Under the pieces are notes generated by a model. It was not told the DNA's origin, made no database searches, and saw only the letters and a list, made by a program, of their open reading frames with translations. Below are positions 5,899-37,797 of a DNA stretch of 38,664 nt, piece after piece (position 1 is the stretch's first letter; every line of letters begins with the position of its first letter). A program made the translations under genes and the position numbers. Source of the stretch: Octopus sinensis. Taxonomy: Eukaryota. The DNA is taken from positions 1-38,664 of the forward strand of contig NW_021835499.1 of NCBI RefSeq assembly GCF_006345805.1. The letters run 5' to 3'.

Positions 5899-5899
5899 C

Positions 5900-15427: not shown

Positions 15428-15475
15428 GTGCATGAATTTGTGCATGAATTAGAAAAAAATTATTATTGTTATTAT

Positions 15476-18938: not shown

Positions 18939-18964
18939 ATTATTAGCAGAAGTCATTTCCTTAC

Positions 18965-19216
18965 CTTCTTCCTTCAAAGAAATCCTTGCATAGCGAGTTT
19001 TCTTGTCATGGAAAGTCCAATCCACATCTGCCTGTGATATATATTTTATCAAAATAGTGGATGTATTACCACTCTGCTGAACTTCTACTCTGCCAGATTT
19101 ATAACATGTTCTATCACATTGAAAGCTTTCATTCACATTTTTCCAGGTAATAGTTCGCTGCATGTTGGGTATTTCTTTAGTTTGAAGAGTCATGTTTCCT
19201 CCAAGTACAAAACTTC
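18965..19216 (-). CDS. Ig-like domain exon of paralog A (252 nt, phase 1-1)
   Basis: TTTTATTTCAG|GA acceptor, GAAG|GTAAGG donor. SFVLGGNMTL..TITWK..SGRVEVQQSGNTSTILIKYISQADVDWTF fits an Ig-like strand pattern. Same length and phase as paralog B. Confidence 0.85.
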
Positions 19217-19576
19217 CTGAAATAAAAATATATATATCAATATTACAGACTAGTTTCCCATATGAAAGATTTCAGGATTAACTTTTCATCATCATCATTC
19301 TCTCAACATCCATTTTTTCCATGCTTGGGATCAAAATTTTCTTTATATACAATTCAAAACTCTTCCTGACATAATATCCCAGACTATTGTATAACAAAGA
19401 GCCTGGAGATTAAATGATGATGGTTATGGTTGAATTTCAAATAAAATTGTTAAAAATTATGTTAATCAGGAAAATTTAAAAACAAAAACATGACTATAAA
19501 CTGAGGGGAGAGAAAGAAATAAAAGAGAGAACTGAGAAGATAGTGTCCAGTTTAAAATGAGAAACAGGTTTCTTAC

Positions 19577-19613
19577 CTTTTTAATGATTTTGTAGACTCT
19601 TTCACACTGCGAG
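19577..19613 (-). CDS. Micro-exon of paralog A (37 nt; frame anomaly)
   Basis: CTCTTTTAG| acceptor, AAAG|GTAAGA donor. One frame gives SQCERVYKIIKK, homologous to B's WQCKKEYKIGILK. Confidence 0.65.
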
Positions 19614-20371
19614 CTAAAAGAGATGAAGACAAAAATATTTTCAAATTTTACATTTTTGAGTATTATTGTCGTCGTCATCGGCGTCATTTAATATCCGTTT
19701 TCCATGCAGAAATGAGTTGGACAGTTTAACCAGAGTTGACAAGATGGAGAGCTGCACAAGGCTCCAGTGGGATTTAGCATGCTGGGTGCTTTTATTTGGC
19801 ACCACATGAGAGCCTGTTCATGGCACTGCCATGTGCTTTTTGTGTGGCAATGGCACAGAAATCTTGCAGGCCAATCTTCTTCAGCGGGGGAGTGAACTTA
19901 ACATATCTGCTGTGGAGTACAGCTCTCTTGAGTACAGCAAGGCCCCAAGCATTTTGGTTGTTTGTCATCTTGTCTGAAAGGCAAGTGGGAGTTGTAGGGT
20001 GTGGGACGTTGTCTCACAGTTGCTGACAGTAAACCTCATTTCTCCCTCTGACTAAGGTTCATGAAGTATTTATTTACCGTCACGTTACAATACCTTGCTT
20101 TGACAGGCAGGTTATGATAAATCCAAAAGCATGATGCGAAGAAAAGTTTGTGTTTGTGTTCTCTTCATTGTTTAGTAGTAAATACAGAAAGAGATAGAAT
20201 GATATTGTAAGAGAACAGAATTAGAGCTAGTGAGAGTTGTAGGGTGTGGGATGTTGTCTCACAGTTGCCGACAGTAAACTTCATTTCTCCCTCTGACTAA
20301 GGTTCTAGCTGGTCAGCCAATACTGAAGGATTACCCACTAAAAAATAGAGCAAAAACAAATGAAAACTTAC

Positions 20372-20423
20372 CATAAAAAAATGTAAACAAGGCAAAGAAG
20401 AAGATGAATAGCTGACTGTCCAT
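20372..20423 (-). CDS. Signal-peptide exon of paralog A (MDSQLFIFFFALFTFFY..)
   Basis: TTTATTTTTCAG|ATT-ATG (exon starts 20426), hydrophobic 17 codons, TATG|GTAAGT phase-1 donor. Confidence 0.82.
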
Positions 20424-20564
20424 AATCTGAAAAATAAATTTTAAAAAGAGTGAAAACTTGTTGTCTCAGTCCCATCAATGGGAGGAACTGATAATATTTT
20501 AGGTCTTATTTTAACTCCTTTTATTTTCAGAATTTCAGTCCCAATGTCTTCTGATGTCACTTAC

Positions 20565-20640
20565 TCTCTCCTCCATTTCCCAAAACACAAAATAACAAGA
20601 AATATTCATGTCAGATGTCTACTTAACAATCATGATGACA
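20565..20640 (-). other. Putative non-coding first exon of paralog A
   Basis: GAGAGA|GTAAGT donor at 20564-20559 would give a 138-nt intron to the acceptor at 20427. TA-rich TATA-like tract at ~20664-20686. 5' boundary unknown. Confidence 0.5.
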
Positions 20641-21240
20641 TTGCTGTGGTATTTAACATTAGGTTATATATACGTGTATATATATAAAAGGCATCGTGTG
20701 TGTGTGCGTACGTGAATGTAATTTATGCATGTCCACAAATTAGCAAGCATGTCGCTCTAATTTTAGGAGGACATTCGTCATGATCCTAGCTATATTTTTG
20801 TCAAATTATTTTACGTATATTTCTAAGTGTATCTCTACTGATTTCCTATAGAATTTCAGGTAAACAGTGAATCTTATGATGTTTCATATTCAAATATGTT
20901 TATGTAAATGATGTTATTAGAGACAGAAAAGATAGGTAATAGGTGTATGTACATATTTCGAGAGTTGTTGTCCTTTCATCAGCACCACATCCTACCCATC
21001 GACTATCCATCATGCCTAAAAGTGTTACACAGTGGGACTGAACCTGGAATCATGTGGTTGGGAAGCAAACTTGCTTGGTTTTAATAGTATTAAAATAGAT
21101 TGTATTTGTATTTTATGGTCAGATCAAGGATCTCATCAAATGCTGATGAAACCTGCTGCTCGTACCATGTAAACAAGTGAAGAAAATATATAGTGCATGT
21201 GTTTATTTGGCAAAAAAAATTTAAATAACCATCCTGAGAT

Positions 21241-21281
<41 letters not shown>

Positions 21282-21287
<6 letters not shown>

Positions 21288-21584
21288 GAAAAACCACTAT
21301 TATGCAATTCAAACAATGATAGACATAAACCAAATCATAAATAAAAAATAAAATATAGTTTAAAACATAACTAGATCACATTCATTTTTGTACTTTTTGT
21401 GATCTAGTTATATGTTTTATAATATATTTTATTTTTTATCTATGATTTCGTTTATGTCTATCATTGTTTGAAGTGCATAATAGTGGTTTTCCTCTAATTT
21501 ATAGATATTATATATTTATATTGTGAAATTTGATTTAATACCAAATTGAATTTTTCCTTGTAAGTTTGGAGTTTATACTAAGAT

Positions 21585-21590
<6 letters not shown>
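21282..21590. repeat. Fold-back element (~98-bp arms, 21282-21498) plus tail, flanked by (TA)n
   Basis: ATTAGAGAAAAACCACTATTATGC.. is inverted as ..GCATAATAGTGGTTTTCCTCTAAT. Confidence 0.85.
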
Positions 21591-21621
<31 letters not shown>

Positions 21622-21714
21622 CCAATAACTGATGAGCATGTCCATGTCTTATTTTTTTCCTTATGTTCCTTTCTCATCCTTCTGTGCATTTCTTACTCTT
21701 TCCTTCTCTCTCTT

Positions 21715-23700
21715 ATCATTTAACATCTGTTCTCCACGCTGGCATGGTTGGAATAGTTTGACAGAAGGTGACCAGCTGAAGAGGTGCCTGGGATCCATAT
21801 TGTTTGTTTTGACATGGTTTTAGTGGCTGGATGCCCTTCCTAATGCCAACCATTTTACAGAGTATAATGTGTGCCTTTTGTGTGGCACCATCACCAGTGC
21901 TTTTCACAAGGTACCAGCAAGAACTTGCACGCTTTTCTTTTGTGGGACCATGGTTTTAGGATCTCAACTCTGTTGTGGTGGGGCAGCTCTGCTCAAGTAT
22001 AGCAATGCACCAAATTTCTTCCTGTCATCTCTTTCATCAGGTTCAATATTTAAAGATCGGTTTTCAAAACATTGACACAAGTCTTCCTGGGTCTCCTTCT
22101 TCACACCAACATGCATCATATAATCTTCCCTTCACCCAACAGAGGGAACAGCTCTCGGAAAATTCTCCATCCTATTTTTATTCTAGCAATTACACTTTAA
22201 GTACAACCTCCTCCCCCCTACTAATCAGAACACCTAGGTAACAAAAACTATCTGCAACTTCTATAATCACAGGGACATTTAAGGAAATCAATTTCTCGTG
22301 TAGCTGTGGTCGTTATGGCTCCTGTACACCTTCACATACAAACACTAATTTCTCTGTTATCCTTCCAACTATTCCACTACACCTCTTGCCTGCTTATAGC
22401 TTGCACTGGGTACATTGAATGGAATTACTGCCTACACCCTTCCTACATACTGAATAGGGACATTTAGCTGATGGGCGAAAGGTCCTGTTGGGTTTCTTGC
22501 TTATTACAACCTTGGTCCTTGCTAAATTTACCTTAAGACCATCTAATTCCAGGTTCTGTTTCCGCACCCAGAATTTCTTTTCTAATTCTGTTACATATTC
22601 TGCTATGAGGGCAAGGTCATTAGCATGTAGAAGTCCTCTGGGCTTCCAGTCTTACATTGCTCTCTTATGGCCCAGAGGATGATGAAGAATAGTAGGGGGC
22701 TGGGAACCAACCCTTGGTGGACACCTACCTATGCACTAAATTCATCAGTGTACACACGGCTAACTCTCACTTTACTAACAGTACCCCTTTACATGGCCTA
22801 TACTACTTTCATGGGCCATTTGTCTATCTCTAGCTTCTTCAGGGACCACTCTATCTCACAGCAGGGATCTCTGTTGAAGGTTTTCTGCAGATCAACAAAT
22901 GCCAAGTAAAACTGCTTGTTCTTAGCTAAATACTTCTTTTGACTATGTATTTCTATCTGGGACAAAATCAAATTGCATTTCAGCCAGCCTAATTCCGCTC
23001 CTAATTAATTGTGCTAAAATTCTCTCTACAACTTTCATCACCTGTTCCAGCATCTTGATACCTCTATAATTACTTCTAAGGCATCTCACTTGCTCTTGTA
23101 GCACCTGACTTCATTGTCATTAGGGATTACATCTTGAATCACCCAATTCACTACATTGGCGAGACTGTATCCAACTACCAGATATCTTAAGCATTTCGAC
23201 AGTGACTCCTCATGGGTCAGGGGACATTCCTATTTTCATATCCTTAATTGCTTTATCTAGCATGCTGGTGTCAACCAGGACAGCTGGTCCCTTTGTAGGG
23301 TTCACATAAGGAAGATTCCCTTCCTCCCGTTCATTCTCCACATCTAATAGTCCCTTATAGTAGCTCTTCCAAATTTCTTTTTCTCCAGAATCACTAATAG
23401 CAAACATACCATTATCTGTCCATACACACTTCTCTTCCACATGTTGATTCTCTAACACAAATGTCTGGCAACCCAGAACACCTCAAGTCTCTCATCTTCA
23501 TATTGTAAACTCCTTCCTTTCTGCTTCTGCTCTGGCAAGATATACCTGACGTTTAGCTCCTCTTTTAGTTGTCTGATATGGTTGTTTGCTCCCCCAATTC
23601 TTCCTGTCATTCCAGGCTTGTCTTGTCTCTTCCATAGTCATGACTAGCTTGTTCCATCACCAGGACTCTCTTGGGCTGGTGGAGCACAATTGTGCAGCTA
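21715..23700 (-). mobile_element. Old degenerate copy of the RTE LINE family (RT region to 3' tail)
   Basis: Broken-frame motifs EKCV..EIWKSYYKGLL, PSPLLFFIIL, LHANDLALIAE, DSFCYLG; family tail at 21715-21900. Confidence 0.85.
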
Positions 23701-23806
23701 TGCCAATGGTCTGTGTTTAACTCAAACACGCACTCATACAATAATCCGTGAACAGAAGACAAAAGAAAATTGCAGCAAAGCTGTGGGATAGTGGTGACAG
23801 ACGTGG

Positions 23807-24060
23807 GGCGAAATGCGTAGCCGTATTTCGAAGGCGGTCAGCTGGCAGAGACGTTAGCACGCCGGGCGAAATGCGTAGCCGTATTTCGTCTGCCTTTACG
23901 TTCTGAGTTCAAATTCCGCCAAAGTCGACTTTGCCTTTCATTCTTTCGGGGTCGATAAATTAAGTACCAGTTACGCACTGAGGTCGATGTAATCGACTTA
24001 ATCCGTTTGTCTGTCCTTGTTTGTCCCCTCTATATTTAGCCCCTTGTGGGTAATAAAGAA
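23807..24060 (+). mobile_element. Young tRNA-derived SINE, family 2, with 10-bp TSD
   Basis: TSD ACAGACGTGG at 23797-23806 and 24061-24070; A-box TGGCAGAGACGTTAGC and B-box GAGTTCAAATTCC. Confidence 0.9.
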
Positions 24061-24079
24061 ACAGACGTGGTGTGCAAGG

Positions 24080-24560
24080 CCACCATTTAACTTGACATTG
24101 CATTTTTATTCTTCTCCTCAGTTTCATTTTGACATATGCCTTGCGTTCTTATCCTTCTGTGTCACGAATTCAGTGTGCACATGGATATTGCGTATTCATC
24201 CTTCTTGCCTTGGTTCCTACTCAGAACTGCTTTGGGTTCATAACCATCTCACGAACTTCGATGGTTGTGGAATAACTGACGAGATTAGGAAATTATTGCA
24301 GTTTGATATCTAGGAGTGATCTCCCTTCTACGACTTCCTTGACCGAGCAACAAACGGCCACACCCATTAACTGTTGCCTAGGAAACTGATCAGGTCCTTG
24401 GTGATGTTCACCGCGGTACATAATAACTCCTGATGCTTCATACATTCCACCCATTCCGGTGTTCCTTTTGATGTACGGACTATATTACCTGGATAGCACT
24501 ACTGGATTATAAACCCTTTTGAATTAGACCTGGTAATAATTTTGAGTCTTTGTAAATGAC
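24080..24560 (-). mobile_element. Possible degenerate R4/Dong-like LINE C-terminal remnant
   Basis: Fragmentary similarity to ..KLL...HH...PR..GGRGL.. across frameshifts. Confidence 0.3.
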
Positions 24561-24627
24561 AGGGAAATGGAATATTCGGCGGAATTCTAGTTTAAACTTT
24601 CCATATAACTCGTCATAACCTTCTTCA

Positions 24628-25054
24628 TTATGGCTCCTGTACATCTTCACATACAAACACTAATTTCTCTGTTATCCTTCCAACTATTCCACTACACCTC
24701 TTGCCTGCTTATAGCTTGCACTGGGTACATTGAACGGAATTACTGCCTACACCCTTCCTACATACTGAATAGGGACATTTAGCTGATGGGCGAAAGGTCC
24801 TGTTGGGTTTCTTGGTCTTTGCTAAATTTACCTTAAGACCATCTAATTCCAGGTTCTGTTTCCACACCCAGAATTTCTTTTCTAATTTTGTTACATATTC
24901 TGCTATGAGGGCAAGGTCATTAGCATGTAGGAGTTCCTCTGGGCTTCCAGTCTTACATTGCTCTCTTATGGCCCAGAGGATGATGAAGAATAGTAGGGGG
25001 CTGGGAACCAACCCTTGGTAGACACCTACCTATGCACTAAATTCATCAGTGTAC
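24628..25054 (-). repeat. Recent local duplicate of 22313-22753 (RTE fragment)
   Basis: Near-identical sequence with a 15-bp deletion (CTTATTACAACCTTG) at a CTTG microhomology. Confidence 0.92.
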
Positions 25055-25690
25055 TGTTACTATTATTTATGACAACCCTAACCCCAAAACCTTAAAGGTA
25101 AAACCAGTACAAACGCACGAACGATGTCATAACAGTGACAAACGAAATATACACGGAAGATAGTTGCTGTTGATAAATAAAAGCAGTAATTTTATTCAGC
25201 TGAATACACATCACTGATTTGTTGAAGGTAAAGATTCCATATAACTCGTCATAGCATTCTCCAGTTTCTTTGGGCATTCTTACACATGCATGACCCCCAC
25301 CACAGAATTTGGGTAAAATTACAGATCAACACCCGCACGATTTTCACTAAGAAAAAAAAAAGACTCGGACTTTTTGCGTGGAATCAAGTACCCTGACCTC
25401 CTAATATGCTGCAAATCCCATATTTTGGTTCGGAATTGGTCCGGAGGGGGGCGGGGACCCTAATTCTAAAACCTTAACCCTAATTCTAAAACCTTAACCG
25501 TAAAGCTAAACGCACGACCGATGTCATAACTAACAGTGACAAACGAAATATAGTTGACGGCTGTAATTTTATTCAGCTGAATACACATCACTGATTTGTT
25601 GAAGGTAAAGATTCCATATAACTCGTCATAGCATTCTCCAGTTTCTCTGGGTATTCTTACACATGTATGACCCCCACCACAGAATTTGTT
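25055..25690. repeat. Two direct copies (~25075-25310 and ~25480-25690) of an unclassified element
   Basis: Shared AACGCACG..GTAATTTATTCAGCTGAATACAC..CCCCACCACAGAATTTG. Confidence 0.8.
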
Positions 25691-25753
25691 GACTCGTAAC
25701 TGTCAGAAAAAATGGATATTTTTTAACAAAAGTTTCCACAAATACACTTTAGA

Positions 25754-26015
25754 GATCTTTTCGGTTTGGACGGCAGTTTTTTCTAGCGGTGTCATATGAA
25801 ATTGACACCCATAATTATAACCCTAGTATCGATCTAATGCATTTCAATCTCTTTTAGGGTTAGGGTTAGGGGTGGGGAGAAGGGTATCTATTTTCTTCAG
25901 AAATGTAAATAAACCCAATCTGTTTCTTAAACGAGGGACATATTCAATCGGCACAGACTGTTTTCACCTCAGATCCCACTTCAGATGGCATGGATGCCGA
26001 TTACATCGGAATTTA
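25754..26015 (-). mobile_element. Internally deleted inverted copy of the element at 28716-31068
   Basis: 25855-25970 and 25972-26015 are reverse complements of ~28954-29070 and ~28716-28758; GATC at both ends of the core. Confidence 0.75.
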
Positions 26016-26689
26016 TTATATATTAAAAAAAAATTCCGAGTGTGGGGTGAGGAGTTTTGGAAAATTCAAACGAAACAGTTTTCTTTATGGGTAACTTTAA
26101 GAAAAAAAAGCATCGTTTTTTAATGAAAACGAAAAATATCGATCTTCCGCAGATGGTATACCAAAACTGGAACCATTTGGATGGTGATTTCCATAAAAAT
26201 ATGTGGTAATCTTGCATATATACACCCTCGCCGACTTTGTTGCCTAACTGCCAGAAAAGTAGATACTTTTCAATGAAATTTTCTACAAATCGCTTAGATT
26301 CTGCAGATTCAGAATATATAGGAATTTGTTGGAAAGAACTTTTCTGAAGAGGTGTGGAAAGTTTCTGAAAATTCATACGACCCGACTTTTTTTCCTCATA
26401 ACTTTTAGTAATTTAACGAATTGCTTTTTCAAGCGGTTTTTTTTTGGATATTTCTTTTTAAAAAAATCTAAAATAATTTCTCGTTTTGTGTTGTTCTTGA
26501 TTGCTTTTCATTCATCTATTCAAGAAATAACATAGAGGTGGATAACAAGTGCAGACAAAGGGATTAGTGTTGCATCATCTTCGAAGAACACCACAATCGT
26601 GTGACAAGTCGCTCCTACAACGACTACCTATCCTATAACAAATGTTCATACAATTTCGGTTGAAAGTTATTAAACAACGTAAAAAAAAA

Positions 26690-27018
26690 TATTTATGTTG
26701 TTTAGAAAAAAAATTTATTTACTTAGTTTTAAAAAAATTATTTACTTTGTGTAAAAAGTTATTTATTTTGTTTAAAAAAACCCAAGTTATGATGAGGTAC
26801 CAAAGGTTTATGTAATTATGATGAGGTACCAAAGGTTTATGTAATTATGGGTATGATGGGGGTACTTGCCGTGTATTTAGGTTGTTTAGAAAAAATTATT
26901 AATTTATTTTGTTTTGGAAAAAAAACCCTACATAACACACTCGCGCTAGGTAGTGGCTGTAGGATCGACTAGCAAGCGCTAGTACGCGCACCGGGACCAC
27001 TCTTCTTAAATAGTACCA
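26690..27018. mobile_element. Partial copy of the GGTAC-TIR MITE
   Basis: AGGATCGACTAG..GGGACCACTCTTCTTAAATAGTACC terminus and similar T-rich interior. Confidence 0.7.
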
Positions 27019-27188
27019 ATAATATTTCATAAAGCATGGATTAGATTCTGTAGGTTTAAAATTGGTTTTATGCAAGCAGGTATGTGTTTATCTATGCAGT
27101 CTGTGTATGGCTGTGGTGAGAGTTTTTCACCTCTTTTACTTTTTTCAGTAAAATACATATGCGAATGGTAAAAGAAAAACTATGGATC

Positions 27189-27423
27189 TTACATTCGACG
27201 GATATTCGTCCTCATCTTGTTTGTTGTTAAGAGTGGTTAAGAGCACGGGCTACTAACCCCAAGATTCCGAGTTCGATTCCAAGCAGTGACCTGAACACTA
27301 ACAATAATAGCATCGAAAAATACCCTTAGGAATGAGAACCCACGTTCGATGGAGGCTGGGGGGTATATCAGCCGAAACCTTGTGTTAACAACAAACAAGA
27401 TGACAGGTATCCGTCGAATGTAA
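27189..27423 (+). mobile_element. Composite repeat: inverted ends, tRNA-like Pol III boxes and hammerhead-like relic
   Basis: 27189-27230 is inverted at 27385-27423. AGTGGTTAAGAGC and GTTCGATTCC boxes; GGCTG..CAGCC-GAAAC at 27354-27378. Confidence 0.55.
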
Positions 27424-27435
27424 AATAATGTACAT

Positions 27436-28264
27436 ACTTTCTCATCTCTTAAATATAGAACTGTAAAAAGCATTCAGTTTACGAACTTTTTGCTTAAATC
27501 CCAGTAACAGGCCATGAAATGTGTTTATGGGGAAAAAATATTGAAAAAAATCGATACATCGGAGAACAAATAAACGATGACGGTATGAGATTGTCGTGAG
27601 GGTGGGTGGGCACTGTCATGGTGCTAAAAGTTCCAGTCCTTAAACTACACGCCAAAAAATGTTTTCTTTTGCTTTTTTTAACAACTTCATAGTTACAAAT
27701 TGCAAGATAAAATAAGGGTTTCTTACCTTCCTTCACTTAGCAAATAATTCCAGTCACTATTTGTGTACAAAGAATTGCAAGGGAACCGGTCTATCATACG
27801 TGGTGGCCGAAATGAAAGTAGATGCAGCGATGGGTGCACCTGTAGCGGTATCTGATATCCTCACTCGAACACACAGACACAAACACGTGTTGCATGCACA
27901 CATACACAACACTTGCTAACACTCACAACCTCTAACTTGTAAATAAAATCTTATCTTATCTCAAACAGTGGAACGGCTTGTCAACGTGCATTTATATTCT
28001 GTTGGCACTACTTTGTATAAATAGTACCTATGGCTTATCTTATTTCGTTACGGATGCGATTGCGTGACTTACCTATGTCACCAACCTCATCACATGCGGT
28101 CGTTTTTTAAGGAACTAACATTCGTCATGAGAGACGATTTTGTGTATCGATTTTTTTCAATATTTTTCCCCATAAACACATTTCATGGCCTGTTACTGGG
28201 ATTTAAGCAAAAAGTTCGTAAACTGAATGCTTTTTACAGTTCTATATTTAAGAGATGAGAAAGT
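27436..28264. mobile_element. ~830-bp element bounded by ~125-bp near-perfect inverted repeats
   Basis: ACTTTCTCATCTCTTAAATATAGAAC..GATACA is inverted at ~28140-28264. No TSD recognised. Confidence 0.75.
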
Positions 28265-28308
28265 TTGAGAGACACTTTCCCTCCCTTCTACCAATCTTGG
28301 AAACCTTA

Positions 28309-28707: not shown

Positions 28708-28754
28708 TATATAATAAATTTCGATGTAATCAGCATCCATGCCATCTGAAATGG

Positions 28755-31068
28755 GATCTTTTCGGTTCGACCGGTAGTTTTTAAAAATAATTTCCACGTA
28801 ACTAAACACTTTTAAACTTCGTATACTGGTAGAATGTGTTTATAAAACATCTCTTTCTCTTGGCTTTATTGAGGGAATTCTATAGTTTGTAAGATATTTA
28901 TTGTTTTTTTTTTTCTTCAATTTCTGCAATTTTAACCAATCAATGACGTCTACTGAGGTGAAAACAGTCTGTGCCGTATGAATATGTCCCTCGTTTAAGA
29001 AACAGATTGGGTTTATTTACATTTGTGAAGAAAAAAGATACCCTTCTCACCACCCCTAACCCAAACCCTAAATTTTAGCCTTTCGTTTTTTTTTCTTAAT
29101 TGTTAAATTAATTTAATTGTTACGCGTGTGTCTAAAATTATTCGTTTTGTTTTTGTTTTGAGTTTTTGCTTTCGTTTTTTTTTCTTAATTGTTAAATTAA
29201 AATTATTTTCCATTGCTTTCGTTTTTTTTTCTTAATTGTTATCCTTAAATTAATTTAACAATCAAGAAAAAATAAACCGAAAGGCTAAAATTTGGGGTGA
29301 GGGTTAAGGTTAGTGACAGGATGTTGTCTGTTTTAGACGCAGCAAATGATTGTAGCTCACTAGAGGCCGTAGGATTAGTTAAAATTCGAAAAATTAAACT
29401 TCGTTAAACTTACAAATTACAATTTTTTCAAGAAAGCCAAGAGAAAAAATTGTTTTATTTTGACACATTCTACCAGTATACGAAGTTTAAAAGTGTCTAG
29501 AAAACTAGAAATTGTATGCCGTTCAAAAGGAAAAGATCCAAAAAATGTTTTATTTTGACACATTCTACCAGTTTACGAAGTTTAAAAGTGTCTAGAAAAC
29601 TAGAAATTGTATGCCGTTCAAAAGGAAAAGATCCAAAACATGTTTTATTTTGACACATTCTACCAGTTTACGAAGTTTAAAAGTGTCTAGAAAACTAGAA
29701 ATTGTATGCCGTTCAAAAGGAAAAGATCCAAAGCATGTTTTATTTTGACACATTCTACCAGTTTACGAAGTTTAAAAGTGTCTAGAAAACTAGAAATTGT
29801 ATGCCGTTCAAAAGGAAAAGATCCAAAGCATGTTTTATTTTGACACATTCTACCAATTTACGAAGTTTAAAAGTGTCTAGAAAACTAGAAATTGTATGCC
29901 GTTCAAAAGGAAAAGATCCAAAACATGTTTTATTTTGACACATTCTACCAGTTTACGAAGTTTAAAAGTGTCTAGAAAACTAGAAATTGTATGCCGTTCA
30001 AAAGGAAAAGATCCAAAGCATGTTTTATTTTGACACATTCTACCAGTTACGAAGTTTAAAAGTGTCTAGAAAATAGAAAACTAGAAATGTATGCCGTTCA
30101 AAAGGAAAAGATCCAAAGCATGTTTTATTTTGACACATTCTACCAGTTACGAAGTTTAAAAGTGTCTAGAAAACTAGAAATTGTATGCCGTTCAAAAGGA
30201 AAAGATCCAAAGCATGTTTTATTTTGACACATTCTACCAGTTACGAAGTTAAAAGTGTCTAGAAAACTAGAAATTGTATGCCGTTCAAAAGGAAAAGATC
30301 CAAAGCATGTTTTATTTTGACACATTCTACCAGTTTACGAAGTTTAAAAGTGTCTAGAAAACTAGAAATTGTATGCCGTTCAAAAGGAAAAGATCCAAAG
30401 CATGTTTTATTTTGACACATTCTACCAATTTACGAAGTTTAAAAGTGTCTAGAAAACTAGAAATTGTATGCCGTTCAAAAGGAAAAGATCCAAAACATGT
30501 TTTATTTTGACACATTCTACCAGTATACGAAGTTTAAAAGTGTCCAGAAAACTAGAAATTGTATGCCGTTCAAAAGGAAAAGATCCAAAACATGTTTTAT
30601 TTTGACACATTCTACCAGTTTACGAAGTTTAAAAGTGTCTAGAAAACTAGAAATTGTATGCCGTTCAAAAGGAAAAGATCCAAAGCATGTTTTATTTTGA
30701 CACATTCTACCAGTTTACGAAGTTTAAAAGTGTCTAGAAAACTAGAAATTGTATGCCGTTCAAAAGGAAAAGATCCAAAGCATGTTTTATTTTGACACAT
30801 TCTATCAATTTACGAAGTTTAAAAGTGTCTAGAAAACTAGAAATTGTATGCCGTTCAAAAGGAAAAGATCCAAAACATGTTTTATTTTGACACATTCTAC
30901 CAGTATACGAAGTTTAAAAGTGTCTAGAAAACTAGAAATTGTATGCCGTTCAAAAGGAAAAGATCCAAAACATGTTTTATTTTGACACATTCTACCAGTA
31001 TACGAAGTTTAAAAGTGCCTAGAAAACTAGAAATCGTGTTGAAAACTACCGTTCAAAAGGAAAAGGTC
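28755..31068. mobile_element. Non-autonomous element with long imperfect terminal inverted repeats whose right end is tandemly amplified
   Basis: Left GATCTTTTCGGTTCGACCGGTAGTTTT versus right AAAACTACCGTTCAAAAGGAAAAGGTC. 28795-28850 is the reverse complement of the satellite unit. Internal palindrome at 29055-29310. Confidence 0.7.
29451..31068. repeat. 95-bp tandem satellite, ~17 copies
   Basis: GTTCAAAAGG recurs at 29521, 29616, 29711, 29806, 29901, 29996 and on to 31051. Confidence 0.97.
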
Positions 31069-31772
31069 CTGTGTGTGTATCCAACAGGTTTCTATCAGTT
31101 TCTGCCTACCAAATCCCTTCACAAGGTTTTGGTCAACCCATGCTATAGTAGATGACATTTACCCAAGGTGCCACATGGTGGGACTGAACCTTAGACCATG
31201 TGGTTCTATTTTCAGTAATGCTTATTTCTAACCTAAAAACAGTGAATGCATCAGTGCTTTATTAGAATACAACTCCCAGCTATTTGCCAAAAATATTAAA
31301 TATGAATATTGTATTTTCTCCTTCCTGGAAACACATCAGGTTAGATAGCCACAGGCGTGGCTGTGGGGGAAGAAGTTTGCTTCCCAACCACATGGTCCTG
31401 GGTTCAGTCCCACTGCAGCAGTACCTTGGGCAAAGTGTTTTCTAGTTCATCCTTCGGCTGACAAAAGACTTGTCAGTGGATTTGGTCAAAAGAAACTGAA
31501 GGAGGTAAAAGATGAATGGTAATGGGTTATAAATAAAGCAATTTTTTGTCAAAAAGTTAAAATCCATAAAAGAGTTTGTTTCAAGGTTAAAACCGAAAAT
31601 AAGAATCTCTTTTCAAATTAAAAATCATGCAATAAGGTAGGAAAAATGAAATTTCGCAATAAAAAAAAATGGATTAAATACTGAAAGGAATAAATAAAAT
31701 CGTTAATATATATTTTTAGGTGTAGTCTAAACCTAAATTTGATATCATCTCTACTAGATTTTTAGTATTAAA

Positions 31773-32847
31773 CCCTTTCGTTACCAAACCGCCCAAAGCC
31801 GCCCGAAAGAAATTTTGGTTAATGTGACCAAACCCGCCCGTATTTACCTATTCATATTTAAATGAGAATATCAGAGCAAATCTCTTTAGTACATTCGTGA
31901 AAACAAGTGATAATACTTCGTAAACAGTCCATCTACAGTTTTGTACAACGATCAAAGTGTAATTTTAATTACGTTAATTTTGGGAGATTTTTTTCCGAAA
32001 TTTGTTCCTATTGTGTTTTCAAAATTTGTAATTCTGACAAAAAATGGATACGAATTTCATTATATCAAGCAGCGAGTCAGAATTCGAAGGATTTTCTACT
32101 GAAGACCTTCATAAATCTAACTCTATGACTGAAAAAAAAAAAGCACGTGGTATTTGATAATGAATCTGATGTTTCATTTTCCGAAAGTGAAAACAGTGAA
32201 TCCGAGAGCTCCGACAGCGATAAAGAAAATGAATTGGCACCTGAATGGAGTGAAAATTAAAACTGTTTCTTTCGGTGATTTTTCTGAAGAAACTGGACCA
32301 AGCCACAGACTTTCCCAGGAGAGTAAAGTGATAGACTATTTTTTTACTTTTTCCGATGAGTCTATTTGAACTCATTATGGCGGAAACGAATCGTTACGCT
32401 AAATGTAAACAAAGCGAAAGAAAGGATAGTTAGTGGTTTCCCACAACCTTAAATGAAATTCAGACTATTTTGCCATAAATATTATTATGGGTATCAGGAA
32501 GTTACCCAGAATAACAAATTCTATCGTAAAATTTTGTTGTATACCCAATTGAATATTAGCTAATAACCCATTTTCTATAGCGATGTTTGAAAAAAAATTT
32601 AATAATTTTATATTTTGTTGAATTAACCTGTATCTACCTGCAATTAGAGTCACCTTGTGACAAAAATTATAGTATAGAATTGGTTGAGAACATTTCATTA
32701 AATTATCTTCCAAAAATCAGATAAATATATTGATAAATAAAAAAGTTATAGTTGTTTAATGAAGCCAGACTAAATTTATGATTATGTTAGAAATTAATTG
32801 AAACACATAAGGGGGGTATTTTGGTCAGAAATATAGTAACGAAAGGG
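31773..32847 (+). mobile_element. Internally deleted piggyBac-type transposon
   Basis: 12-bp TIRs CCCTTTCGTTAC / GTAACGAAAGGG; TTAA on the right and TTAAA on the left. Acidic N-terminus plus ELIMAETNRYA..WFPTTLNEI..IMGIRKLP remnant at ~32150-32520. Confidence 0.88.
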
Positions 32848-33544
32848 TTAAACTGCCTGTGCCTTGTCCTACCCCTCGATGTTGAGAATTATTTAATAAT
32901 TCAGTTTTTCAATGCAGAAAAATATTTCTGCTAAAAATAGGAACTTTCTAACTACAAATATAAAGCATTATTTCATATAATAAATTTACACAATAGTTTT
33001 TTTTTCTTGCTTTGATTAGACTCCTAAAGTAATCAAAGCTAAACAGAACTTAATATTTATGGATTTATTAATAATCGAAATAAAGTTTTGATATTGTGTG
33101 AAAAAATTGGTCTTGGTAAAAAAAGACTTGGTCTTGGTAAAAAAAACTTCTCTGAAAATACAAGAAAAATAAAAAGGCTATAAGGAGTCGTATGGGATGC
33201 CGAAACCAAAATTTTGCCTTTTCTTTATAGATTCTTGAAAGGATGAAAGACAAAGTTGACCTTCGCAGGATTTGAACTCGGCATACTGAGGGAACAAATC
33301 CTGCATGACATTTTATTGGATCCAGATAATTTACCTCATTGTTTATCATTAAGGTAGGCCATGGTGGGATTTGAATTTGGAACATTAAAAAGCAGAACTA
33401 AATAATCTTTTCTACTTTGGTTACGAGGCCTGAAATTTTCAGGAAGGGGGCAGATCAATTATATGGACCCTATTGCTTAACTCAGTGGTTCTCAACCAGG
33501 GTCCATATAAGGTGTTGTTATTAAAATTTATCTGCAATAAATTG

Positions 33545-33750
33545 CTTGGCTCAGTGGTTAGAGTGTCAGGCTTGCAATCATGAGGTAGTGAGTTCGATTC
33601 TTGGACTGGGCTGTGTTGAGCAAGACACTTTATTTCACATTGCTCCAGTTCACTCGGCTGTAGAAATTAGATGCAACTTCTCTGGCGCCAAGCTGTATTG
33701 ACCTTTGCCTTTCCTTTGGATAACATTAGTGGCATGGAGAAGGGAGGCTA
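33545..33750 (+). mobile_element. tRNA-derived SINE, family 3
   Basis: TGGCTCAGTGGTTAGAG..GAGTTCGATTC; homologous to 10017. Confidence 0.75.
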
Positions 33751-34013
33751 GTATCTATGTTTGTTCTTTCTCGAGTCATGCCTGGCTCATAAGGGCTGGT
33801 TTCCCGGTCTCTTGGCATATAGGTTTCCCACCTGGACAGGACACCGGTCTGTCGCAGGTGAGCTGCAAGATGCAGGAGAAAAGAGTGAGAGGAAGTTGTG
33901 GCATAAGAGTCAGCAGTTCTTTTTAATGTTCCAAATTCAAATCCCACCATGGCCTACCTTAATGATAAACAATGAGGTAAATTATCTGAGTCGGATGTCC
34001 TATTATAGCCATC

Positions 34014-34042
<29 letters not shown>

Positions 34043-34052
<10 letters not shown>

Positions 34053-34300
34053 TATTAGAGACAAAACCACTATTTTGCAAAACAAACAAGGAAAGACAAG
34101 AAACGATTGTAGTGGCGGTTTTTTTGACTATTTATTAAAATTTTATGTATTGATTAAGTCTTTCCTTGTTTCTTTTGCAAAATAGTGGTTTTGTCTCTAA
34201 TAATATTTTATAATATTTTACTATAAAATTGGATTTAATCCTAAATCTGATTTTTTTCCCTGTAAATTTGGATTTATTCCCTAATATTTATTATTATTAT
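34043..34300. repeat. Fold-back element (~55-bp arms, 34043-34212) plus tail, in (TA)n
   Basis: TATAAAATATTATTAGAGACAAAACCACTATTTTGCAAAA is inverted at 34158-34212; tail shared with 1180-1250. Confidence 0.85.
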
Positions 34301-35149
34301 ATATATATATATATATATAGGGAAATGTGTTGTTGAAAATGCAGATAAATTCAAAAACACGTAATTGTTTAAAATACATTTATTTTCAATGGTTAGAATT
34401 ATTTACTTTAATAAAATAAAATAATTTATTTAGAAAGGTTAAACAACAATTTGGGAAGACGATAGTCGATACACAGTAGGATGGAATGTCGGAGTCGTGA
34501 TCAGTGTGTAAGGACTGCTTCTTTGTTGATAGCCATTATGTTTACATGAAAGAACGATGGTTGAAGTGGTGAAGAAAACATTTATCTACCGTTATGTTGA
34601 AAATACCTTACCTTGTCAGGTAAGTTATAAAATTTGAGAGCATGTGAAAGAAAGTTAGATGTGGTAGAATTTTTCTTTGTACAATTTTGTGTACATGTTC
34701 TCTTAGCAGTAAGCCACTGATAGCAATAGAATGATTTTGTTAGGGAACAGATGTAGAGCTAGTGAAAGTGGTAGGGTTGTGGGATGTTGTCTCACAGTTG
34801 CTGACATTAAATTTCATTTCTCTTCCAGACCATTGTCTTTAGTAGCTGCCATGATTGGGATCATGGTTCTAGCGTTCCGCTCCCTAACTCATGGTAGCTG
34901 TCTCTGACTTGGTTGAGTTGTCACGAGCCAACTGACCAACTGTCTTTTTGCTTGAGGTTCTTGCTTTTATAACTATCCAGGATAGACCTATCGTTGAGAA
35001 CAATGTCCTTTGTTGGTGGTACTGTGATATCTCTATTCTAGCTTTTGGTGAAGTAGAAGAGGTTAGAAAGGGTCAAGTGGTGAAGACATTATTTTGGCCT
35101 AGCTAAAGGCATCTGGAAAATGTAAAACTGCTGTCAGAGAGAAACCATT

Positions 35150-35420
35150 GTTCCATCATCATCATCACCATCATATAACGTCCGTTTTCCATGCTAGCAT
35201 GGGTTGGACAGTTCAACCAGGGTCCAGGAAGCCAGGAGGCTGCACCAGGCTCCAGTCTGATCTGGCAGTGTTTCTACAGCTGGATGCCCTTCCTAACAAC
35301 AACCACTCCGTGAGTGTAGTGGGTGTTTTTATGTGCCACTGGCACAGGGCCAATGAGGCCGGCAACGGCCACAATTGGTTGGTGTTTTTTACGTGCCACC
35401 AGTACAGAAGTCAGTCAAGG
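35150..35420 (-). mobile_element. RTE-LINE 3' tail fragment
   Basis: (CAT)n followed by CGTCCGTTTTCCATGCTAGCATGGGTTGG, the reverse complement of the LINE end. Confidence 0.8.
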
Positions 35421-36154
35421 ATGACTGTGGTACTGCTACGCCAGCCATTGGGTATGACTCCATCATGAGCTACCTGGTTTACAATTTGGGTGACCAGACA
35501 ATAGCCCACGCCACAAGATGTTTTAAGCATCTCAGCAGTGAATCCTGATGGCCTCATCTGATTTTTGATTTGTTAAAATACTAAATACTGGTGACTTTTT
35601 TTCGGTGGTCAAGCTTGTCGTTCTGCTTGATTGGCTTCCCTGTGGAAGTTAAGCTAGTTTGACCTATGTAGTCCCCACCACACCCTCCACATTTGAGAAA
35701 ATAGATTAAGTTCTTCAAAGCACATTATGGTAAAAATTTGACTTGATTTAAATTTGTATGTTGAGCCCTCAAAGGGTAAGATGCAAGTTCCACAGTTGGG
35801 GCCGTTGTACTTTTTGACTTGTAATTTTTTTTCAAGTTCTTGGAGTCGCTTTTCTCAGGTTTTAGGGATTTGATGCCATCGTGCAAATTATGGGGCACAA
35901 AAGAAAAAGCACCAACCAATCCTTTCTTGCATGCTATACCAATTTTTTCTACATTCTCCATAGGCTAATTATGATGAGAGCAAAAAGCATGACTCCAGCA
36001 AAGAAGAATATGCAAAGGCTTATTGCTACACGCGCGCCATTGCTGAGTCCTTCTGATGTAGCAACTTTAAAATCTTTTGTTCTTTCATTATCTGCAAAAA
36101 ATGAACAGTAAAGCATATATCTTTTGTTTTTGATAAAAAAAAAAATTGTAATAT

Positions 36155-36697
36155 TTAGCCACATACCGAAGTTTAGAAATAGCAGCCATAGAACCTTAGC
36201 TATTTCTTCTACTCTGGTATCCTTATCCCGTCCATACATTTGATTTTGCCTCTCTTCAAGACTAACACACCACACTTCCTCAGTCCGAACTCCATTCTGA
36301 TATCAGCACTGAAGGTAAATACTGTATCAACGAGGGAACTGACTTGGCTTCATAAAGTTTGAGGTCATCCATGAATAACAAATGGTTGACTTTTTGTTGG
36401 TAGCTTTCGAATACACACCCAGCTTTTGCTTTCCTCAGAATCAGTGTTAGTGGTATCAAGCACATTACAAAGATCAGTGGGGGCAGACAGTCTGTTTGGA
36501 AGATGCCCCTCCCGATATCTACTGTCTGTAAACTTCTTCCATATGCTATCAGGTTCGTCCTCCCATTTGCCATACTTTTTCCAAGCAATCGCTCAACATT
36601 TGATGCAACCCTTCTGCTCACATGGCAGGACTCCATCTTTTCTTTTCCAGATGTTTGTACATTGACTCTGCAAGTATTCCAGTCAATAATTTCCACA

Positions 36698-36698
<1 letters not shown>
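36155..36698 (-). mobile_element. R4/Dong-clade LINE RT fragment joined to a 3' end, adjacent to (TAA)n
   Basis: GRGIFQTDCLPPLIFVMCLIPLTLILRK..NHLLFMDDLKLY..DIRMEFGLRKCGVLVLKRG. (TAA)n at 36699-36735 on its 5' side. Confidence 0.8.
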
Positions 36699-36735
<37 letters not shown>

Positions 36736-36736
<1 letters not shown>

Positions 36737-36935
36737 GGCGGTGAGCTGGTAGAATTGTTAGCACACTGGACAAGATGCATTTTTGTCCATTGCTATGTTC
36801 CGAGTTCAAATTCTGCCGAGGTTGACTTTGCCTTTAATACTTTCAAGGTCAATAAAATAAGTACCAGTTGAACACTGGGGTCGATGTAATCAACTCATTC
36901 ATACCTCCCCTAAGCTGCTCTTGTGGAATAATTTG
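36736..36935 (+). mobile_element. tRNA-derived SINE, family 2
   Basis: GGCGGTGAGCTGGTAGAATTGTTAGC..GAGTTCAAATTC. Confidence 0.8.
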
Positions 36936-37048
36936 AAATAAAAATACTAATTATAATCATTATTATTATGAACTTGAGGTTGTTTCCTGGCAGAATTGTT
37001 ACTGCACCAGAAAATATATTCAATAGTACCAGCCAAATAGACTCAAAT

Positions 37049-37065
37049 TTATGTAATCAAGGAAC
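37049..37065 (-). CDS. Candidate short terminal exon of paralog B ((G)SLIT*)
   Basis: TTTCAG| acceptor 71 nt after the donor and phase-1 compatible, but two alternative AGs lie 6 and 13 nt upstream. Confidence 0.35.
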
Positions 37066-37136
37066 CTGAAACTGATGACTGTGCATGAATTAGAAAGAAT
37101 TATTATTGTTATTATTAGCAGAAGTCACTTCCTTAC

Positions 37137-37388
37137 CTTCTTTCCCAAGAGTAATAGTTGCATTACAGGAGTTCTTGTCATAGAATCTCCAAAACAAATC
37201 CCCTCTCGTTATATTCTCGATGTAGAGAGTAGAAGTTCTATGAATCTGCCTAACTGCATATGTGTCATTCTCGCAATATTCCTTATTGCACTCGATAGTA
37301 CGGACCTTATTTCTCCAGACCACAGGCCTTTCCATATAGGGCATATCTTTAACCTCAAGATAGATACATTGTCCGAGCACAGGGTTTC
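37137..37388 (-). CDS. Ig-like domain exon of paralog B (252 nt, phase 1-1)
   Basis: TTTATTGCAG|GA acceptor, GAAG|GTAAGG donor. NPVLGQCIYL..PVVWRN..TSTLYIENITRGDLFWRF; 27/83 identical to paralog A ungapped. Confidence 0.88.
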
Positions 37389-37703
37389 CTGCAATAAATA
37401 TATGAATCATTATTATTGACTAGTTTCCCATATGAAAGATTTCAGGATTCATTTTTATCATCATCATTGTTTCAACACCTACTTTTACATATCTGGAATC
37501 AGAGTTTTCTTTATATAAAGATTTGAGACACTTCCTCTCGTGATATCACAGGTGATTGTATAACAAAGAGCCAGGACATTAAATAATGACGGTCATGGTA
37601 GGTGAACTTCAAGTAAAATTGTATGAGTTAAGAGAAAAAAATAAAAAAACAGAACTGAAAAGATAGTGTCTAGTTTAAGATGAGAAAAAGGTACTCCACT
37701 TAC

Positions 37704-37745
37704 CTTTCAAAATACCTATTTTGTACTCTTTTTTACATTGCCAAC
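37704..37745 (-). CDS. Micro-exon of paralog B (42 nt, phase 1-1; xWQCKKEYKIGILK-G)
   Basis: TTTGAATAG| acceptor, AAAG|GTAAGT donor, in frame with the 252-nt exon. The signal exon is expected beyond the window end. Confidence 0.8.
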
Positions 37746-37797
37746 CTATTCAAATAGAAAACAAAAATATTTTCAGATTTTAAATTTTTGATTACTC

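Follow-up and report, generated by a model that had tools for sequence, protein, structure and literature searches.

Two 252-nt exons on the reverse strand of the window, the whole 38,664-nt stretch of DNA analysed here, raise the question of why the protein-coding parts of two related modules should differ more than the introns beside them. The exons, at positions 18965-19216 (module A) and 37137-37388 (module B), are both entered and left in phase 1, and in each of them exactly one frame is open, that of phase 1-1; at the base composition of the window, 84 stop-free codons are expected by chance with a probability of about 0.003 per exon. An earlier note, made from the sequence alone, had described these equal, phase-sharing exons as a tandem Ig-like gene pair of cephalopod origin. 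The window is about 97% identical to O. vulgaris OX597842.1, and the DNA is indeed that of Octopus.

The proteins encoded by the two exons match each other with a tblastn E value of 1.6e-14, and the earlier count of only 27 identical residues among 83 was reproduced. Nucleotide identity is 143/252 (56.7%) in the exon vs 250/306 (81.7%) in the intron upstream of it (Fisher p = 1.5e-10), with divergences K of 0.645 and 0.21, respectively. The similarity forms a single colinear block (18939-19662 vs 37111-37794) that runs along the intron, as had been claimed. The 32-nt identical block (19248-19279 = 37418-37449) is exact, and the near-identity noticed around the donor amounts to 32 of 34 bases, with 25 of the first 26 intron bases shared. 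Within the exon, the longest identical run is the expected 10 nt, ATGACAAGAA.

A family profile search gave 31 matches, about 28 of which are family proteins named 'uncharacterized LOC', and all members with a source name come from Octopus. These proteins comprise a signal peptide, one to four modules and a C-terminal anchor, each module being encoded by a micro-exon of 39-42 nt and a 252-nt exon, all in phase 1. In O. sinensis XP_036369874.1 (P0002) the order is signal, micro-exon, D1, micro-exon, D2 and anchor, and it maps onto module B and an anchor exon of the window; this model may be partly chimeric because it spans 35 kb and skips intervening copies. The description as a tandem gene pair has to be replaced: A is the D1-type module and B the D2-type one of the two-domain architecture seen in P0002, and the two exons code for the corresponding Ig-like domains in a single member of a family of small surface proteins that is restricted to Octopus. 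Family members lie in arrays that duplicate in tandem, and the O. vulgaris and O. sinensis loci share the D1-D2-anchor order and differ in copy number. A spliced octopus mRNA was found for one family member, which at the level of the family removes the earlier reservation that spliced transcripts might be missing.

No family member passes the Pfam threshold, and only sub-threshold matches to I-set, obscurin, CD79b and CD2 were seen. A literature search with six family locus IDs found no mention of them; with names no more specific than 'uncharacterized protein LOC...', the family appears undescribed, as proposed. Its assignment to the Ig fold comes from structure prediction. The AlphaFold model of the D2-type module (pLDDT 89.3, pTM 0.83) is a nine-strand beta-sandwich, and among the 50 Foldseek matches listed all are Ig domains or Ig-containing chains (TM 0.42-0.66, probability 0.98-1.00), including Ig domains of basigin/CD147, shark vNAR, antibody V and titin/obscurin I-set domains. 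Unlike a close relative of these neighbours, the module is only 8-20% identical to them in sequence, with Foldseek E values of about 1e-3, and since it lacks the canonical intradomain disulfide it is best regarded as a very divergent Ig-like domain, not of the V, I or C set.

Module B belongs to a gene that appears intact. Its 42-nt micro-exon (37704-37745, reverse strand, as are all features given here; phase 1-1) is recognised by its AG/GT boundaries and by a frame that stays open into the D2 exon. It encodes xWQCKKEYKIGILKG, the first strand of the D2 Ig-like domain, and matches residues 116-130 of P0002 exactly. It is followed by a conserved 315-nt intron (37389-37703) holding the 32-nt block at 37418-37449, and by the D2-type exon (37137-37388), identified by its single open frame and its match to the family profile. 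Conservation continues in the 3' flank of this exon (37064-37136), which, if the donor is not used, reads through as GKEVTSANNNNNNSF and then a stop; this read-through peptide forms the C-terminus of the RefSeq models P0005 and P0006. About 73 nt of the flank match that of the O. bimaculoides D1 exon almost perfectly, and about 38 nt (TTCTGCTAATAATAACAATAATAATTCTTTCTAATT) read as identical in the genomic contig L006. The terminal coding exon (35949-36091), located by tblastn, acceptor and stop, encodes a stalk and a C-terminal hydrophobic anchor. Entered through a phase-1 AG acceptor, it reads …SNGARVAISLCIFFFAGVMLFALIIISLWRM and then a stop (TAG at 35951-35949), and is 72% identical to the tail of P0002 (tblastn E = 1e-17). 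The anchor would be a GPI-attachment signal or, alternatively, a transmembrane segment without a tail. Of the earlier suggestion of small secreted or surface proteins, the surface part is retained and the secreted part is not, given the predicted anchor. Module B and the exon at 36091-35949 thus make up the 3' half of a gene that looks intact and has its 5' end beyond position 38664.

Copy A is different in nature. Its signal-peptide exon (20372-20423, MDSQLFIFFFALFTFFY, ending in phase 1) is conserved in relatives: the O. vulgaris version has a 3-nt indel that preserves the frame, and the O. bimaculoides version differs more than its flanks. The micro-exon (19577-19613) is 37 nt long and has suffered two 1-nt deletions relative to the 39-nt in-frame form (xSQCERVYKIIQKG), which O. 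vulgaris and O. bimaculoides carry and to which tblastn found a match in O. sinensis. The three-exon model proposed earlier is therefore right in its coordinates and not in its translation, which runs into a stop codon because the middle exon has 37 nt instead of 39 nt; exon 1 spliced straight to exon 3 is in frame. Next comes a conserved 360-nt intron (19217-19576, holding the 32-nt block at 19248-19279) and the D1-type exon (18965-19216) of this truncated downstream duplicate, which is 74.6% identical in nucleotides to its O. bimaculoides orthologue and whose O. sinensis counterpart carries two frameshifting deletions. After 26 nt of conserved donor flank (18939-18964), the conserved 3' flank is broken up by a SINE-like insertion (18745-18938) common to the window and O. 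vulgaris and absent from O. sinensis and O. bimaculoides. The whole duplicated A unit, at approximately 13650-21258, holds three exons (signal, micro-exon and D1) together with a portion of the D1-D2 intron. It includes no D2 or anchor exon, and a tblastn search of the window found no second anchor exon. In O. vulgaris a second copy of exactly this stretch lies upstream of B (L001 8416-15556, 94-98% identical). Copy A is a truncated 5' duplicate, frameshifted in the window and in O. sinensis.

Comparison with other octopus genomes shows all coding exons of the gene to be diverging at 2-5 times the rate of the adjoining non-coding DNA; the excess of exon over intron change holds between orthologues as it does between A and B. 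Between the window and O. bimaculoides, K is 0.31 in the exon and 0.061 in the intron, while spacer DNA shows 9.5% mismatches; contig L006 gives 0.44, 0.27 and 0.56 for exon, intron and outer flank. At the shallowest depth, each domain exon differs from O. vulgaris at 11 of 252 positions (for D2, nine of the 11 differences change an amino acid) and the introns at 1 of 331 (A) and 0 of 315 (B). Intron invariance at this depth is only modestly unusual, as 16 of 97 background 300-bp bins have one mismatch or none. Signal and anchor exons also diverge more than their flanks.

Such a pattern could be left by ordinary old duplicates, whose exons drift near neutrality through weak constraint or as pseudogenes while purifying selection on the intron is the only oddity. 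Consistent with this, the mismatch rate between window and O. bimaculoides is lower in the intron than in spacer DNA (21/358 vs 269/2835, p = 0.024) and the B intron remains 77% identical to L006 where the outer flank is barely alignable (61% for DNA beyond the conserved 3' flank); when copy A of the window is compared with its O. vulgaris counterpart, dN is close to dS (0.047 vs 0.041), copy A is frameshifted in two genomes, and dS is saturated for the deep A-B pair (omega 0.4-0.9). However, drift cannot exceed the neutral rate, and the exon pN between window and O. bimaculoides, 0.233, is about 2.5 times the spacer mismatch rate (Fisher p = 2.8e-8). Intact B copies differ by 16 nonsynonymous changes to one synonymous, and the 252-nt exon is kept in 9/9 copies examined in four genomes, being open in all but the O. 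sinensis A copy. We consider drift of old duplicates improbable.

Diversifying selection on the exons is the best reading of their excess divergence. Pooled over close copies there are 60 nonsynonymous and 9 synonymous changes (omega about 1.7, p = 0.08), and pairwise dN/dS ranges from 1.15 to infinity. The diversification proposed earlier is thus borne out in that amino-acid change exceeds the non-coding rate, while a dN/dS above 1 is not formally established. The competing account is a mutational process confined to exons, namely patchy micro gene conversion, multi-nucleotide mutation or a locally raised mutation rate; conversion donors would be other family members homologous only within exons, and the changes need not be useful. 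Substitutions do fall in tight clusters, with five changes in 9 nt in B (ENDT/DRGK) and six within 38 nt in A. Exon synonymous divergence is also raised (NG86 pS 0.36 vs 0.095 for spacer), and both this rise and the clustering suit patchy conversion or multi-nucleotide mutation no less than selection. The exon excess over intron remains in the pseudogene-like, frameshifted copies (window A and O. sinensis A), and a distant paralogue is homologous in the exon and not in the intron. Within the 252-nt D2 exon, two variable sites are found in all four combinations, which indicates recombination among copies. Against this, only 8/44 synonymous third positions differ at conserved residues, and 2/16 four-fold sites do so, near the spacer rate, which argues against general exon hypermutation, and the ratio of 60:9 exceeds the neutral expectation. 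About 200 kb of related loci yielded no donor for the clusters, and family exons, only about 57-73% identical in nucleotides, are a poor conversion substrate. An exon-confined process is accordingly judged rather unlikely, and selection remains the preferred reading.

The other side of the contrast is the intron. Change in the module intron, and in some 75 nt past the domain exon, is slower than in spacer, so part of the exon/intron contrast arises because the intron itself is constrained. The conserved stretch around the micro-exon covers about 50 nt upstream and the whole 315-360-nt downstream intron, while identity within the micro-exon is low, at 62-74%. In 8/9 copies and in O. bimaculoides, the 32-nt block has at most one mismatch. 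Upstream of O. sinensis B1 it was missed by a search allowing 6 mismatches, and later alignment shows one substitution there.

Recent gene conversion or concerted evolution sparing the exons would also yield similar introns; the exact 32-nt block and 82% intron identity beside a 57%-identical exon fit such a process, and tandem copies do exchange sequence. The A intron, however, is nearer to its O. bimaculoides orthologue (337/358 identical, K = 0.061) than to B in its own genome (K = 0.21), so no homogenisation of introns has occurred since the split from O. bimaculoides. Introns group by module type, the ratio of exon to intron rate is alike at every depth (3.1x, 5.1x and more), and the near-invariance of the block across copies fits an overall pattern that points to constraint, leaving intron conversion very improbable. 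Equally hard to credit is an independent non-coding RNA gene in the intron (snoRNA, miRNA or similar), or a dispersed repeat. A stretch ATGATGATGATGA...CTGA resembles C/D boxes and snoRNA models match weakly at 19239-19299 (E = 5-6), but no Rfam match reached threshold anywhere in the window, and neither stable nor covarying structure was seen in the copy A intron: RNAalifold gave a weak consensus of -25 kcal/mol across about 450 nt, with a covariation term of -2.7, and on either strand the segment with the 32-nt block folds worse than its shuffled versions (z = +1.1 to +1.7). In O. vulgaris and O. sinensis, about 210 nt of the intron have been lost from the functional D1 copy, and in all related loci compared the intron sequence occurs only beside family exons. 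The two objections raised at the outset, a dispersed repeat and recent conversion, therefore fail.

Lineage-specific tandem Ig-superfamily receptors under diversifying selection are known from several animals, including primate KIR/LILR and CEACAM, teleost NITR, amphioxus VCBP and snail FREP. The octopus family resembles these in having a signal peptide followed by small Ig-like domains outside the cell, short or absent cytoplasmic tails, with members that are transmembrane or apparently tail-less, one domain per phase-1 exon, clustered genes whose copy number differs between close species, and rapid amino-acid change with recombination among copies. It differs in having no sequence relationship to them and no Pfam Ig match at threshold, in lacking the canonical B-F disulfide while conserving another cysteine pattern (ECD-x-TC and others), and in splitting each domain over a micro-exon and a main exon. 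Vertebrate neural micro-exons have highly conserved flanking introns, and the 39-42-nt octopus exons are likewise flanked by unusually conserved, unstructured intron sequence; unlike them, the octopus micro-exon is itself variable and the functional D1 copy tolerates its 210-nt intron deletion. Exons diverge faster than introns in cone-snail conotoxins and abalone sperm lysin. So do those of crotaline snake venom PLA2 and of the small serum protein array, with KA/KS reaching 1.74 and an intron KN of 0.065 (PMC6609765). The octopus locus shares with such genes the greater exon than intron divergence in tandem duplicates, and a KA/KS of at least 1 among the youngest copies that falls below 1 with saturation in older pairs. 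Its products, however, are membrane-anchored Ig-like proteins rather than secreted toxins, inhibitors or gamete proteins, its signal-peptide exon is not conserved either, unlike that of conotoxins, and its exon/intron contrast partly reflects real intron constraint.

Taken as a whole, an Octopus-only family of Ig-like surface proteins with exons under diversifying selection is a reasonably probable explanation. The conserved unstructured intron would contain protein-bound splicing signals by which the micro-exon stays spliced to the domain exon, and the conserved 3' flank may support an anchor-less read-through isoform. Recombination among tandem copies would reshuffle ectodomain variants, the ectodomain serving as a recognition surface under diversifying selection, most likely in a host-pathogen setting or another conflict-driven form of recognition. 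Divergence of exons beyond that of introns is a pattern seen in recognition genes pressed to diversify.

The two domain exons, 18965-19216(-) of copy A and 37137-37388(-) of module B, are each 252 nt long, form a single open frame and are entered and left in phase 1, and their products share 27 of 83 residues (tblastn E = 1.6e-14), as the earlier note had described. Global alignment of the two units gave 143/252 identical bases (56.7%; JC distance 0.645) for the domain exon and 250/306 (81.7%; JC distance 0.21) for the upstream intron (19217..19576(-) in A and 37389..37703(-) in B), the difference in identity having a Fisher p of 1.5e-10. The intron contains a 32-nt block that is exact between A and B, the longest identical run within the exon is 10 nt, and 25 of the first 26 bases past the donor are identical, so that the claim of an intron better conserved than its exon is borne out. 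The A-B similarity forms one colinear block (18939-19662 versus 37111-37794), bordered by SINE-like dispersed repeats of which further copies occur elsewhere in the window.

A and B had been taken for a tandem pair of genes, a reading that must be given up. The O. sinensis protein P0002 (XP_036369874.1, 260 aa), 81-84% identical to A and B, consists of a signal peptide, SQCERVYKIIKK micro-exon, A-type domain, WQCKKEYKIGILK micro-exon, B-type domain, and a stalk with a hydrophobic C-terminus. Its mapping located in the window the 42-nt B micro-exon (37745-37704(-)), the B exon and the terminal anchor exon of the B gene (36091-35949(-)), which is entered in phase 1 behind an AG acceptor and codes for ...ISLCIFFFAGVMLFALIIISLWRM up to a TAG stop. 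Since P0002 carries both domains in series and these three exons map to the window, A is the D1-type and B the D2-type domain of a single architecture. The B gene runs past position 38664, and its 5' part falls outside the window. Copy A, which has a signal exon (20372..20423(-)), a micro-exon (19577..19613(-)) and the D1 exon and is followed by neither a D2 exon nor an anchor exon, is a truncated duplicate; when the sequences following A and B were compared by tblastx, only shared repeats came up and no second anchor exon. In the three-exon model proposed for A the exon boundaries stand, but the joined reading does not, because exon 2 is 37 nt in the window and the frame runs into a stop; exon 1 spliced straight to exon 3 is in frame. 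In O. vulgaris and O. bimaculoides the same micro-exon has 39 nt and keeps the frame, and it has a tblastn match in O. sinensis, where the D1 exon of copy A bears two frameshifting deletions. Mutually exclusive exons of the Dscam type are ruled out as well, both exon types being in series in P0002, other members having 2-4 tandem modules, and A possessing its own upstream signal exon.

The O. vulgaris locus (L001, OX597842.1) matches the window colinearly, in reverse orientation and with about 97% identity, and holds three domain exons, namely A, B and C, a second A-type copy upstream of B, which sits in a duplicate of window 13650-21258 that is 94-98% identical. Array structure differs among the three close genomes. 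The plan of a micro-exon and an exon of about 252 nt, phase 1-1, with a signal and a hydrophobic C-terminal anchor, is the same in the O. vulgaris, O. sinensis and O. bimaculoides loci; in the window the signal exon is present with A and the anchor exon with B. Family arrays also contain inverted copies, since the O. bimaculoides locus of another member has an opposite-strand family-type domain exon (L008 8000-8242(-)) at a distance of about 1 kb from the annotated exon.

Gene models predicted automatically for such arrays can mislead. The O. vulgaris model P0001 (L001 10001-35639) is chimeric and in the wrong frame, with two misframed micro-exons and an internal acceptor, and the O. sinensis model P0002 (L002 10001-45011) spans 35 kb to connect the first D1 with the second D2 and anchor, passing over an intact D2 with its anchor and a frameshifted D1. 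P0001 takes as its last exon a short ORF, VEIINCSRMYICTLVELNIM and then a stop, at window 14619-14678(-). This ORF lies in the duplicated part of the D1-D2 intron and is unlikely to be a genuine exon.

Several other elements accompany the array. A 95-nt tandem repeat occupies 29451-31034 (16.7 copies, 97% matches); its O. sinensis counterpart (L002 24939-25422) has only about five units, so this satellite has recently expanded or contracted. A SINE-like element (18745-18943), which carries a 67-nt tandem repeat of 3.7 copies (18458-18704; the whole at 18458-18943), has inserted 26 nt past exon A; it is common to O. vulgaris and absent in O. sinensis and O. bimaculoides, and an inverted copy is found at 35155-35416. 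The product of the neighbouring gene at about 5574-9400(+), annotated in O. vulgaris (L001 41782-45639), is 370 aa long and contains an ependymin domain (PF00811). The ORF fragments at 4673-5017(-) and 9603-9866(-) resemble a mariner-type transposase C-terminus and the reverse transcriptase tail of an RTE-like LINE, and long (CA)n/(TG)n-rich tracts surround positions 6000-6990.

To define the family, a profile built from A and B was compared with 1.84 billion representative proteins. Of 31 hits, about 28 form a coherent family with 1-4 modules per protein, and 18 proteins reached E <= 1e-10 by hmmsearch over the 83-residue module, many of them with 2-4 modules. All members whose source is named are 'uncharacterized' or 'hypothetical' proteins of O. 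sinensis, O. bimaculoides or O. vulgaris, and many share one chromosome within each species. The family was detected by exhaustive profile search and lies beyond word-index search, which with A and with B returned either a single match, a chimeric 72-aa O. vulgaris 'hypothetical predicted protein', or none. In the literature search, six family locus IDs were mentioned in no paper, and a query on octopus Ig-family expansions gave nothing relevant. The earlier view that these proteins could not be assigned to a described family therefore holds, the system being a sequence member of none. A 1,067-nt octopus metatranscriptome contig encodes an intron-free member, and therefore the family is spliced and expressed; this spliced transcript is evidence for the family and not for copies A or B specifically.

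Regarding the fold, neither A nor B has any Pfam hit, and no family member passes the threshold of the curated Ig models (such as Pfam I-set, V-set and Ig_3), the best one falling short of the I-set cut-off (23.7 bits) with 23.6 bits and the others scoring lower. Profile search of PDB sequences gave weak matches, all to Ig domains (obscurin, CD79b, myotilin, CD2 and titin), with E = 0.2-0.5 for the first four. AlphaFold was uninformative with the two-sequence alignment of A and B (pLDDT 42); with 23 family modules it produced a nine-stranded model with pLDDT 89.3 and pTM 0.83. Each of the 50 PDB matches listed by Foldseek for this model is an Ig domain or a chain containing one (TM 0.42-0.66, probability 0.98-1.00), among them basigin, vNAR, titin/obscurin, antibody V domains and CEACAM. 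The canonical disulfide between the B-strand and F-strand cysteines is not present in the module. Invariant in the family are the C-strand tryptophan (W38) and the Cys of the C'-region motif ECD, the only invariant Cys; A has no B- or F-strand Cys, and the Cys at the predicted B-strand position of B is found in the window copy only. The module is thus predicted to have an Ig-like, very divergent fold, which gives structural support to the Ig-like domain proposed previously.

Divergence was compared at four depths, and the proposed exon bias holds in each. Between D1 and D2 within the window, dN is 0.55-0.72 and dS 0.78-1.39, the latter saturated. Against the syntenic D1 orthologue of O. bimaculoides (L003), the exon is 74.6% identical (K = 0.31), the intron 94.1% (K = 0.061) and the 3' flank 25/26, while orthologous non-coding spacer blocks have K = 0.064-0.127, with 269 mismatches in 2835 positions overall (0.095). 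The nonsynonymous proportion in the exon (pN 0.233) exceeds the spacer rate by a factor of 2.5 (Fisher p = 2.8e-8), which contradicts pure neutrality of the exon change, and the intron of copy A is somewhat slower than the spacer (p = 0.024). At conserved residues, 8 of 44 third positions differ, near the spacer rate; the exon excess is therefore mainly amino-acid change and not general hypermutation. The NG86 pS within the exon is also high (0.36) because many codons have multiple hits. Module B compared with a genomic contig of a presumably more distant octopod (L006) gave K = 0.44 for the exon and 0.27 for the intron, and the outer flank is only 61% identical (K = 0.56), which shows real constraint on the intron. 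Against O. vulgaris, each exon differs at 11/252 positions (9 amino-acid differences each) and the introns at 1/331 and 0/315, or 22/504 and 1/646 when pooled; differences amount to about 3% in the downstream flanks and 2.15% in the background. That background is heterogeneous, 16 of 97 bins having at most one mismatch, and this weakens any claim of strong intron constraint at the O. vulgaris depth.

Pairwise dN/dS among close copies ranges from 1.15 to infinity. A count by codons (32 amino-acid-changing versus 2 synonymous-only) overstates the effect; counting substitutions gives 60 nonsynonymous to 9 synonymous, with omega about 1.7 and one-sided p = 0.08. The signal and anchor exons likewise diverge more than their flanks, the signal exon differing from that of O. 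bimaculoides at about 9/49 positions and by a 3-nt indel beside flanks that are about 95% identical. In a second paralogue pair, which is possibly not orthologous, the exon is about 73% identical and the last 100 nt or so of the intron about 90%. Conservation of the intron across the whole family is ruled out by a distant paralogue whose SINE-filled intron has a 45-nt match only.

Other origins of the intron similarity can be rejected. Gene conversion between A and B would have made their introns alike, but the A intron differs far less from its orthologue in O. bimaculoides (K = 0.061) than from the B intron of the same genome (0.21). An independent dispersed repeat could also place similar sequence at both sites, but this intron sequence was found only beside these exons, and the distant paralogue has an unrelated intron. 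An RNA gene of the snoRNA or miRNA type hosted by the intron would account for its conservation; however, Rfam gave no match at the gathering threshold and, at the E-value threshold, only noise (E = 4-6) in the intron region, the RNAalifold consensus fold is weak, and single sequences around the conserved block fold more poorly than shuffled controls (positive z-scores). Conserved yet unstructured, the intron may be where splicing factors bind to keep micro-exon and domain exon coupled.

The exon divergence may alternatively come from patchy conversion or multi-nucleotide mutation confined to the exon. Changes are clustered, with five in 9 nt in B and six in 38 nt in A, and the excess is also seen in frameshifted copies. 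Furthermore, the four D2 copies (window 37137-37388; L001 16262-16513; L002 15976-16227 and 43546-43797) show all combinations of ENDT/DRGK at codons 39-42 with G/E at codon 62, implying recombination or conversion inside the D2 exon. An N-D-T glycosylation sequon arises in the ENDT variant.

These data establish a modular, membrane-anchored Ig-like family in dynamic tandem arrays, in which the coding exons outpace their surroundings and the micro-exon introns are conserved. Judged from sequence, the ectodomain would be an extracellular recognition surface under diversifying selection, with variants shuffled among copies. The most conserved part of the module is the DNA directly 3' of the domain exons (window 37064-37136 and 18939-18964; L003 29997-30070; L006 about 770-850). 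This donor flank of about 75 nt reads through as GKExTSANNNNNNSF, x being V, M or I, and then a stop. Because two RefSeq models (XP_014774040.2 and XP_014775462.1) terminate in this read-through peptide, an anchor-less, intron-retaining isoform may be produced. A more far-reaching proposal, which we consider very unlikely, is that octopuses possess a lineage-specific set of Ig-like surface receptors with a mechanism devoted to varying their exons and restricted to them, either templated micro-conversion or targeted mutation between tandem cassettes. The conserved introns would serve as fixed scaffolds in pairing and splicing, and reading through the conserved donor flank would yield an isoform lacking the anchor. 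Such a set would be the invertebrate equivalent of variable recognition receptors and would act in immunity or in telling self from non-self.

By analogy, and with no sequence membership, the family may function like lineage-specific arrays of Ig-superfamily receptors. It also resembles 'accelerated evolution' genes with conserved introns, such as the habu small serum protein array, where KA/KS is 1.74 alongside an intron KN of 0.065 (PMC6609765). With genes of the conotoxin, venom PLA2 and lysin type it shares an exon rate above the intron rate. Conotoxins, however, keep a conserved signal-peptide exon beside the hypervariable mature region, a pattern not seen here, where the signal exon itself outpaces its flanks. 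The locus is a clean molluscan case in which exons evolve faster than introns at each of four time depths and the micro-exon intron is under a constraint of its own.

Cephalopods have large genomes and complex biology, and to our knowledge no family of rapidly diversifying recognition receptors has been described in them. The present locus indicates a family of about 30 genes, restricted to Octopus, that encode Ig-like surface proteins. These are publicly 'uncharacterized' and missed by Pfam, and their ectodomains change faster than nearby neutral DNA. These genes are concrete candidates for studies of immunity, gametes or cell recognition, and the family is a testable candidate for a diversifying receptor repertoire.
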